DNA of 64,000 nucleotides from Saccostrea echinata (taxonomy: Eukaryota), in contig NW_026889789.1 in the NCBI RefSeq assembly GCF_033153115.1, positions 1,612,001 through 1,676,000 of the forward strand, in the 5' to 3' direction. A program made the translations under genes and the position numbers. The notes beneath the pieces are model-generated. The model was not told the origin of the DNA. It saw only the letters and a program-made list of their open reading frames with translations, and ran no database searches. This document shows positions 18,839 through 19,255 of the stretch, piece after piece. Within the stretch, counting starts at the first letter, position 1, and each line of letters starts with the position of its first letter.

Positions 18839-19047
18839 TTTCATTTTTAAAGATAATCTAATGTTACAAAGGTATAATTGTTAACAACATTAAAAAAAGC
18901 TCTACTTTTCCATAATTATATATTTATCTCAATTCCCGCTCGTTCTTACATTTAATAAACCCAGGTCTTTAAAATAAATATTGTACAACTGTTTCTTCAT
19001 TTAATCAAACTCATGTAGCATTTGTTTTCTTTATTTCTGACAGGTCT

Positions 19048-19099
19048 CCCCTCTGATGAAGGCATCTGAGCCAGAAACGCAGAAAGCATGCGTCAGGGG
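19048..19099 (+). ncRNA. Type I hammerhead ribozyme-like motif, predicted cleavage after C19094
   Basis: Stem I CCCCU/AGGGG; core CUGAUGA (19053-59); stem II GGC-AUCUGA-GCC with A.A at its base; GAAA (19074-77); stem III ACGCA-GAAAGCA-UGCGU; GUC cleavage triplet. Confidence 0.7.
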
Positions 19100-19255
19100 T
19101 ACTGGAAACACTCTAAACTTTTATTTATTATTATAAATATCACTTTACCTGTTTGTGCGAATCTAAACAGAAGAGAAAGAAGAGGACAGGTATACGATCT
19201 AATACTTAAAGTACTTGAATTTTTATTCTTCATTTATTCATTATTTTTACTATTA

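Follow-up and report, generated by a model that had tools for sequence, protein, structure and literature searches.

A putative domesticated 5'-leader type I hammerhead in a small clade of oyster membrane-protein genes, probably impaired in LOC133200500

Hammerheads in messages and mobile elements

In chrysoviruses and fusariviruses, the 5' UTR contains type I hammerheads that cleave their own RNA, and this cleavage is required for cap-independent translation (PMC13725137). They share with the oyster element described here the type I form, a length of 50-70 nt, a position in the 5' leader ahead of an ORF, the lack of an obvious loop-loop tertiary contact and a cut site that would place the ORF on a 3' fragment lacking a cap. 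The viral motifs, however, belong to RNA genomes of viruses of fungi and plants, whereas the oyster element is encoded in DNA, in spliced nuclear genes of an animal, and abuts a 3' splice site; moreover, some of its copies have their start codon 5' of the cut.

Host messages are already known to contain hammerheads, either in the 3' UTR, as for Clec2, or within introns (PMC6155905). The 3' UTR of mammalian Clec2 genes contains a discontinuous hammerhead (Martick et al. 2008, reviewed in PMC6155905), which, in the account given by that review, was domesticated in the messages of a membrane-protein family and presumably regulates them in cis by cutting, a situation resembling the one proposed here. 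The Clec2 ribozyme is, according to the same source, of type III, split by a very long helix I, and its cleavage in the 3' UTR removes the poly(A) tail, whereas the oyster element is a compact type I motif at the 5' end that would remove the cap. The amniote intronic hammerheads HH9 and HH10 (RECK, CTCL; de la Pena and Garcia-Robles 2010, reviewed in PMC6155905) are likewise conserved on the sense strand of host pre-mRNAs and are described there as thought to derive from retroelements; they are deep intronic and have conserved tertiary contacts, while the oyster element sits at the 5' edge of an exon.

Two further systems come from mobile elements. R2-type non-LTR retrotransposons have HDV-like ribozymes at their 5' ends (Ruminski et al. 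2011, as cited in PMC6155905 and PMC13725137), which lie, as the oyster element does, just upstream of an ORF, trim the 5' end of a co-transcript and are reported in these citing papers to promote translation initiation; they represent another ribozyme class, and a mobile element rather than a host gene. The hammerheads of Penelope-like elements and animal retrozymes are, like the oyster element, of type I (Cervera and de la Pena 2014; PMC8557442; bioRxiv 10.64898/2026.07.22.740005). They are present in many copies as part of pLTRs or tandem units; their helix III is very short, and cleavage takes place in the dimer. Of the oyster element, by contrast, there are four copies, none of them in a repeat, with a helix III of 5-7 bp. 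We found no description in the literature of a hammerhead at the front of a signal-peptide exon in animal protein-coding genes.

The element in LOC133200500

The initial annotation of the window, the 64,000-nucleotide stretch of Saccostrea echinata DNA analysed here, had reported a hammerhead motif behind a splice acceptor. This observation is confirmed: the letters CCCCU-CUGAUGA...AGGGG stand exactly at 19048-19099 of the forward strand, and both direct reading of the sequence and a descriptor scan recover the complete core, the three stems and the GUC triplet (Table 1). With our custom descriptor, this was the sole hammerhead-like match on either strand of the whole window, for which about 0.01 matches would be expected even with a looser descriptor. 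The core box agrees with the type I consensus C3-U4-G5-A6-N7-G8-A9, and G12-A13-A14, the A15.1-U16.1 pair (A 19077 with U 19093) and an H residue at position 17 (C 19094) are all in place, with three helices of 5, 3 and 5 bp around the core, of which helix I is open and helices II and III are capped by loops. The one departure is at the base of helix II, where the initial annotation had rightly flagged a non-canonical A.A: the Watson-Crick pair 10.1-11.1, normally G-C and indeed G-C in the two canonical paralogues (L005 and L006, see below), is replaced by A 19060 facing A 19073.

The start codon of the gene forms part of the motif, since AUG 19088-19090 begins with the last base of the helix III loop and extends two bases into the 3' strand. 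It opens an ORF of 34 codons with the look of a signal peptide that reaches the GT donor after 19189 in phase 0. The exon contains no AUG 3' of the predicted cut. The sole usable start is 19088, and the claim that the element overlaps the start codon of a spliced gene holds, with RNA contigs covering exons 2-5 and the 19189/20103 junction present in the RefSeq protein. A cut, if any, would fall within codon 3, as had been proposed. Another AUG, at 19056 in the CUGAUGA box, opens a 26-codon upstream ORF (19056-19136) in a different frame that overlaps the main start.

Table 1. Features of the element and of the window gene LOC133200500 (window coordinates)
Feature	Position	Strand	Evidence
Pyrimidine-rich tract and CAG 3' splice site, ttatttctgacag ending at 19043	19031..19043	+	sequence
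Hammerhead and signal-peptide exon, LOC133200500, predicted	19044..19189	+	RefSeq XP_061192273.1 (P0151) N-terminus
Helix I, 5' strand CCCCU	19048..19052	+	pairs with 19095-19099
Core box CUGAUGA (C3-A9)	19053..19059	+	sequence, descriptor scan
Helix II, 3 bp: GGC 19061-19063 / GCC 19070-19072; loop AUCUGA 19064-19069	19060..19073	+
A10.1 opposite A11.1, both unpaired, base of helix II	19060, 19073	+
Core G12 A13 A14 (GAA)	19074..19076	+	sequence, descriptor scan
Helix III, 5 bp including A15.1-U16.1: ACGCA 19077-19081 / UGCGU 19089-19093	19077..19093	+
Helix III loop GAAAGCA	19082..19088	+
C17, predicted cut 19094/19095 (GUC/A), within codon 3	19094	+	hammerhead consensus position
Helix I, 3' strand AGGGG	19095..19099	+	descriptor scan
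Start codon and signal peptide MRQGYWKHSKLLFIIINITLPVCANLNRRERRGQ	19088..19189	+	phase 0, GT donor at 19190
Exon 2, family-defining cysteine-rich domain	20103..20313	+	spliced RNA contigs from 20134/20137/20089 to 20310(+3)
Exon 3	20758..20871	+	GT..AG joints 20310(+3)/20755(+3) and 20871/21030, 3-4 runs
Exon 4	21030..21138	+	joints 20871/21030 and 21136(+2)/23178(+2)
Exon 5, transmembrane segment	23180..23344	+	RNA contig X1 record 1 extends past 23344; ORF 23187-23348

The window gene corresponds to LOC133200500, whose protein XP_061192273.1 starts with the translation of 19088-19189, continued from 20103. In three to four runs, spliced RNA contigs contain the junctions 20313/20758, 20871/21030 and 21138/23180, all of the GT..AG type. 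That transcripts include 19044-19189 is likewise predicted by the RefSeq model, in which the exon is present, but is not confirmed by the RNA contigs, none of which fell on 18600-19583 in the four runs; only XP_061192273.1 predicts the hammerhead exon in the mature mRNA. The same exon had been described as the first of the gene. An upstream exon is implied, however, because the acceptor just ahead of the element is conserved among the copies and is used by the RefSeq model of one paralogue (L028), so that the hammerhead exon is probably not the first.

Further observations concern the transcripts of this gene. One contig (X3 record 12) runs 14 nt 5' of the exon 2 acceptor, over 20089-20102, and continues with 16 letters that do not fit the stretch, which could reflect intron retention or another 5' end. 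Two apparent 3' forms are seen: XP_061192273.1 reads past 21138 to a stop at 21142, giving 179 aa without the transmembrane segment, and the RNA contigs splice 21138 to 23180, the exon that encodes it. In the intron between exons 4 and 5, the region 21700-23200 attracts many RNA contigs at 90-95% identity with a summed depth of up to about 1200; this pile-up is the signature of an expressed repeat family and not of the window gene.

The host family consists of single-pass membrane proteins with a cysteine-rich ectodomain and is very large in oysters, with at least 150 copies of exon 2 in the S. echinata genome; among public proteins it forms 462 clusters at 50% identity. Its named members, in Saccostrea and Ostrea, are all 'uncharacterized'. 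Searched singly, the exons of the host gene gave no Pfam match, and the protein atlas returned unnamed mollusc clusters only. A protein search with the exon 1 peptide, which is too short and divergent, retrieved no paralogue.

The Rfam search proposed in the initial annotation yielded no hammerhead match on the forward strand, neither at the gathering threshold over the window nor at E<=10 with 351 nt and 69 nt around the element. This null is uninformative for the window copy, because the Rfam 15 hammerhead models equally miss the canonical paralogue copies (L005:1112-1195 and L006:976-1056, about 80 nt each, E<=10). The Rfam 15 models lack sensitivity where a type I motif has a long helix III. 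Across the whole genome, RF00163 (gathering threshold 34 bits) produced two sub-threshold matches, of 25.5 and 23.1 bits, neither of them hammerhead-like. Weak matches to SNORD66 and sR47 raised the candidacy of a C/D-box snoRNA, which we rejected: there is no D box by the 3' stem and the element measures just 52 nt.

Copies in paralogues and footprints in other oysters

Comparison of the first exons of paralogues, suggested as a check on the initial annotation, revealed canonical hammerheads at the matching position. We ran the hammerhead descriptor over loci fetched around the nearest exon 2 paralogues, and the upstream regions of 51 of the at least 150 paralogues were inspected. In two of these loci, L005 and L006, a textbook type I hammerhead lies 5' of exon 2, on the strand of the gene. 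In the L005 copy (1122-1184), helices I and III measure 6 and 7 bp, the box is CUGACGA, helix II is GGACA/UGUCC with G10.1-C11.1, followed by GAAA, and the site is GUA; in that of L006 (986-1046), helices I and III both measure 5 bp, the box is CUGAUGA, helix II is identical to that of L005 and the site is GUC. The exon is laid out as in the window, with a pyrimidine tract and CAG, 4-6 nt, the hammerhead, a short leader, an AUG with signal peptide and a GT donor. The AUG lies 23-26 nt 3' of the hammerhead in both loci, so that here the ribozyme belongs to the 5' leader. Two short upstream ORFs occur within the hammerhead of L006, whereas that of L005, with its CUGACGA box, has none.

A fourth copy, at L028, is decayed: the box reads CUGAUGG and helix II is nearly gone, with helix I intact. 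Its core-box AUG either opens an ORF leading to the signal peptide or, as in the RefSeq model XP_061192282.1 (P0044), belongs to the continuation of an upstream exon; this model uses the acceptor just 5' of the relic. A YAG acceptor precedes helix I by 4-6 nt in all four copies. L018, the nearest neighbour of the window gene in a weak tree, is without hammerhead, and its acceptor abuts the AUG. In that locus (region 3600-3700), a long (TA)n run lies some 35 nt ahead of the acceptor, where it may mark the site of a deletion. On the minus strand of L005 (2627-2697), a long near-perfect hairpin matches the mir-605 model at 29.7 bits (E 0.011; threshold 98) and is probably the inverted repeat of a small intronic transposon.

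The window, L005 and L006 elements share 31 invariant columns in a three-way alignment, all core bases included; we relied on this alignment, as pairwise MAFFT of such short hammerhead pieces was noisy (for example, window versus L005). The CUGAUGA box is invariant save for N7, and every catalytic base (C3, G5, A6, G8, A9, G12, A13, A14, H17) is conserved in the three copies. With these three sequences, the paired fraction of the pair cells of the hammerhead structure is 93.6%, compared with 15-51% for slid partners, and the covariation score was reached by 11 of 500 shuffles. Each helix shows one compensatory double change: the fourth pair of helix I is U-A in the paralogues and C-G in the window, the third pair of helix II is A-U in the paralogues and G-C in the window, and helix III shows likewise A-U to G-C. 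With L028 giving the polarity, these changes fall in the window lineage, which means that the fold persisted for a while once the genes had duplicated. Helix II, of 5 bp in L005 and L006, has been reduced to 3 bp in the window copy by a deletion.

Between L005 and L006, identity amounts to 77% over the hammerhead, to 66% over coding exon 2 and to about 45-55% over the aligned bases of the adjoining intron and signal-peptide sequence, where gaps are many. The hammerhead is better kept than its surroundings, which argues for past selection on the fold and excludes chance. A covariance model built from the three copies scored them at 88, 85 and 65 bits, and the decayed L028 copy at 30.5 bits. When this model and three sequence patterns were run over the whole genome (923 Mb), only these gene-family copies emerged. 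One pattern gave 4 matches in 923 Mb, all in the one gene family, versus 0 for the reversed-pattern controls; another gave the 3 intact copies and 1 unrelated match, versus 1+1 in the controls. The four copies lie on the plus strand of a single contig (C40), at 1.63, 2.30, 2.78 and 3.13 Mb. On the strength of these sequence comparisons, we regard the window element as hammerhead-derived and as placed directly 3' of a conserved splice acceptor.

In the exon 2 tree, L005 and L006 form a pair (support 100/95), which the window gene joins weakly (83/50). Because the tree is poorly resolved, it does not discriminate between one gain of the element and several losses. Four paralogues carry the element in any case, so that the one-off capture envisaged in the initial annotation gives way to a feature of the family.

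The evidence from other species comes from RefSeq peptides rather than DNA. The Saccostrea cucullata protein XP_062566427.1 contains LLMKACQPKTQ, which matches the window hammerhead in frame 0 with a score that 0 of 300 shuffles reach, and this peptide implies a shared A at 10.1 together with a change of G12 to A. A second S. cucullata protein, XP_062582379.1, begins MKTETRPT and resembles L028. In Ostrea edulis, XP_056014819.1 begins MSETQSTTSAVSRLS, which in frame 1 covers the L006 helix II 3' strand, GAAA, helix III, the cut site and helix I (0 of 300 shuffles); judged from the peptide, translation of this gene (LOC125683333) apparently starts upstream of the cut site. The S. cucullata and O. 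edulis proteins thus appear to carry translated remnants of the element.

Origin, activity and fate of the element

The initial annotation had ascribed the element to a retroelement, an origin that we rejected, having found no support for it. In 923 Mb there are four copies, each in a paralogue of one family and none in a repeat; nothing in the limited flanks inspected tied the element to a Penelope-like element or a retrozyme. A 101-nt stretch at the window element is single-copy in the genome, and the model and pattern searches yield gene-associated copies only. Helix III, at 5-7 bp, also falls outside the 1-3 bp of the minimal hammerheads that act as dimers.

The fold energies concern the state of the window copy. 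Taken as an isolated sequence, it does not favour the hammerhead (-15.3 kcal/mol) but a slipped 9-bp hairpin formed by CCUCUGAUG with CGUCAGGGG (-18.4 kcal/mol), which is 3.1 kcal/mol more stable, and the exact hammerhead accounts for 0.25% of the ensemble. The minimum-energy fold of L005 is the hammerhead, and that of L006 is nearly so, with the same junction. Owing to the A.A at 10.1/11.1, the 3-bp helix II and the more stable competing hairpin, the window copy is predicted to be the least likely of the copies to cut, and the ribozyme of the window gene is most likely impaired, weak or inactive. An extra base beside helix II could be tolerated if both A's bulge out, as in viroid hammerheads. 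The window copy may also still be active, because the three compensatory changes argue for continued selection on the fold.

We consider it probable that the element is a domesticated 5'-leader type I hammerhead of a small oyster gene clade, probably impaired in the window gene. An ancestral type I hammerhead would have stood at the very start of the signal-peptide exon, 4-6 nt past the 3' splice site, in genes for cysteine-rich single-pass membrane proteins. Mechanistically, the leader ribozyme of L005 and L006 most likely cuts its own transcript, as we infer from its sequence; the cut would strip the upstream exon, the cap and the upstream AUGs and leave a short-leader RNA with a 5'-OH, resulting either in silencing or in cleavage-licensed cap-independent translation of the message. 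In the window gene, where helix III contains the AUG and the cut falls 3' of it, cleavage would kill the message; there G10.1-C11.1 has been lost, helix II is short and the slipped hairpin is preferred, and the element may be turning into ordinary leader and coding sequence, a conversion that would already be complete in L028 and the S. cucullata relatives. The four copies would then represent a decay series, with two canonical members, one with a broken 10.1/11.1 pair and an AUG in helix III, and one relic that uses the core AUG as start.

A bolder version of this proposal, which we offer tentatively, is that the exon has retained, at its 5' edge, a self-cleaving hammerhead since the split of Saccostrea and Ostrea as a built-in switch, which would be the first hammerhead conserved in the 5' leader of protein-coding mRNAs of animals. 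Cleavage would remove the upstream exon, the cap and the upstream AUGs, and the resulting 5'-OH mRNA would be either translated independently of a cap, as with the viral 5' UTR hammerheads, or silenced; as copies decayed, start codons would repeatedly have moved into the ribozyme.

The interpretation given in the initial annotation, that an active ribozyme in the window gene severs its own cap and start codon, so that expression depends on a competition of folding with splicing and ribosome scanning, seems to us unlikely. The core, the three helices and the GUC site are intact, the single compensatory change in each helix suggests ongoing selection, and O. edulis LOC125683333 apparently also begins translation upstream of the cut, so that the arrangement may recur. 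Nevertheless, the A.A in place of G10.1-C11.1, the helix II of only 3 bp and the energetic preference for the slipped hairpin count against cleavage, and an efficient ribozyme here would destroy the message, as the sole usable AUG lies upstream of the cut and the exon offers no other downstream. Taken as a whole, with the hammerhead ancestry and the overlap with the start codon included, the reading of the initial annotation is partly supported.

Less probable still is a three-way junction that acts without cutting, in translation control, ribosome recruitment or as a splicing signal, the core merely shaping the junction. Such a role would suit the constant distance of 4-6 nt from the acceptor and the varied places at which start codons fall within the element, which are hard to square with efficient cleavage, and the type I hammerhead fold resembles core domains of IRESs (PMC13725137). 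Yet three copies keep all catalytic bases, beyond what a junction would need, and translation of the virus was abolished by a catalytic point mutation (PMC13725137). Finally, a chance match to the relaxed descriptor in an ordinary exon is hardly credible: about 0.08 such matches per Mb per strand arose in 48 Mb of simulated sequence of like composition (some 150 per genome) and Rfam gave no hammerhead match, but the canonical homologues at the same exon position, their covariation and the pattern counts confined to this cysteine-rich family refute it.

The implications for the window gene are modest, its copy being probably weak or dead. For the family, the comparison points to a conserved, covarying hammerhead in the 5' leader of spliced animal genes, at a fixed 4-6 nt past the acceptor and about 25 nt before the AUG, which would provide a natural cellular system for testing cleavage-licensed cap-independent translation against silencing by decapitation. 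In turn, the putative decay series would illustrate how a ribozyme can become leader and signal-peptide coding sequence.
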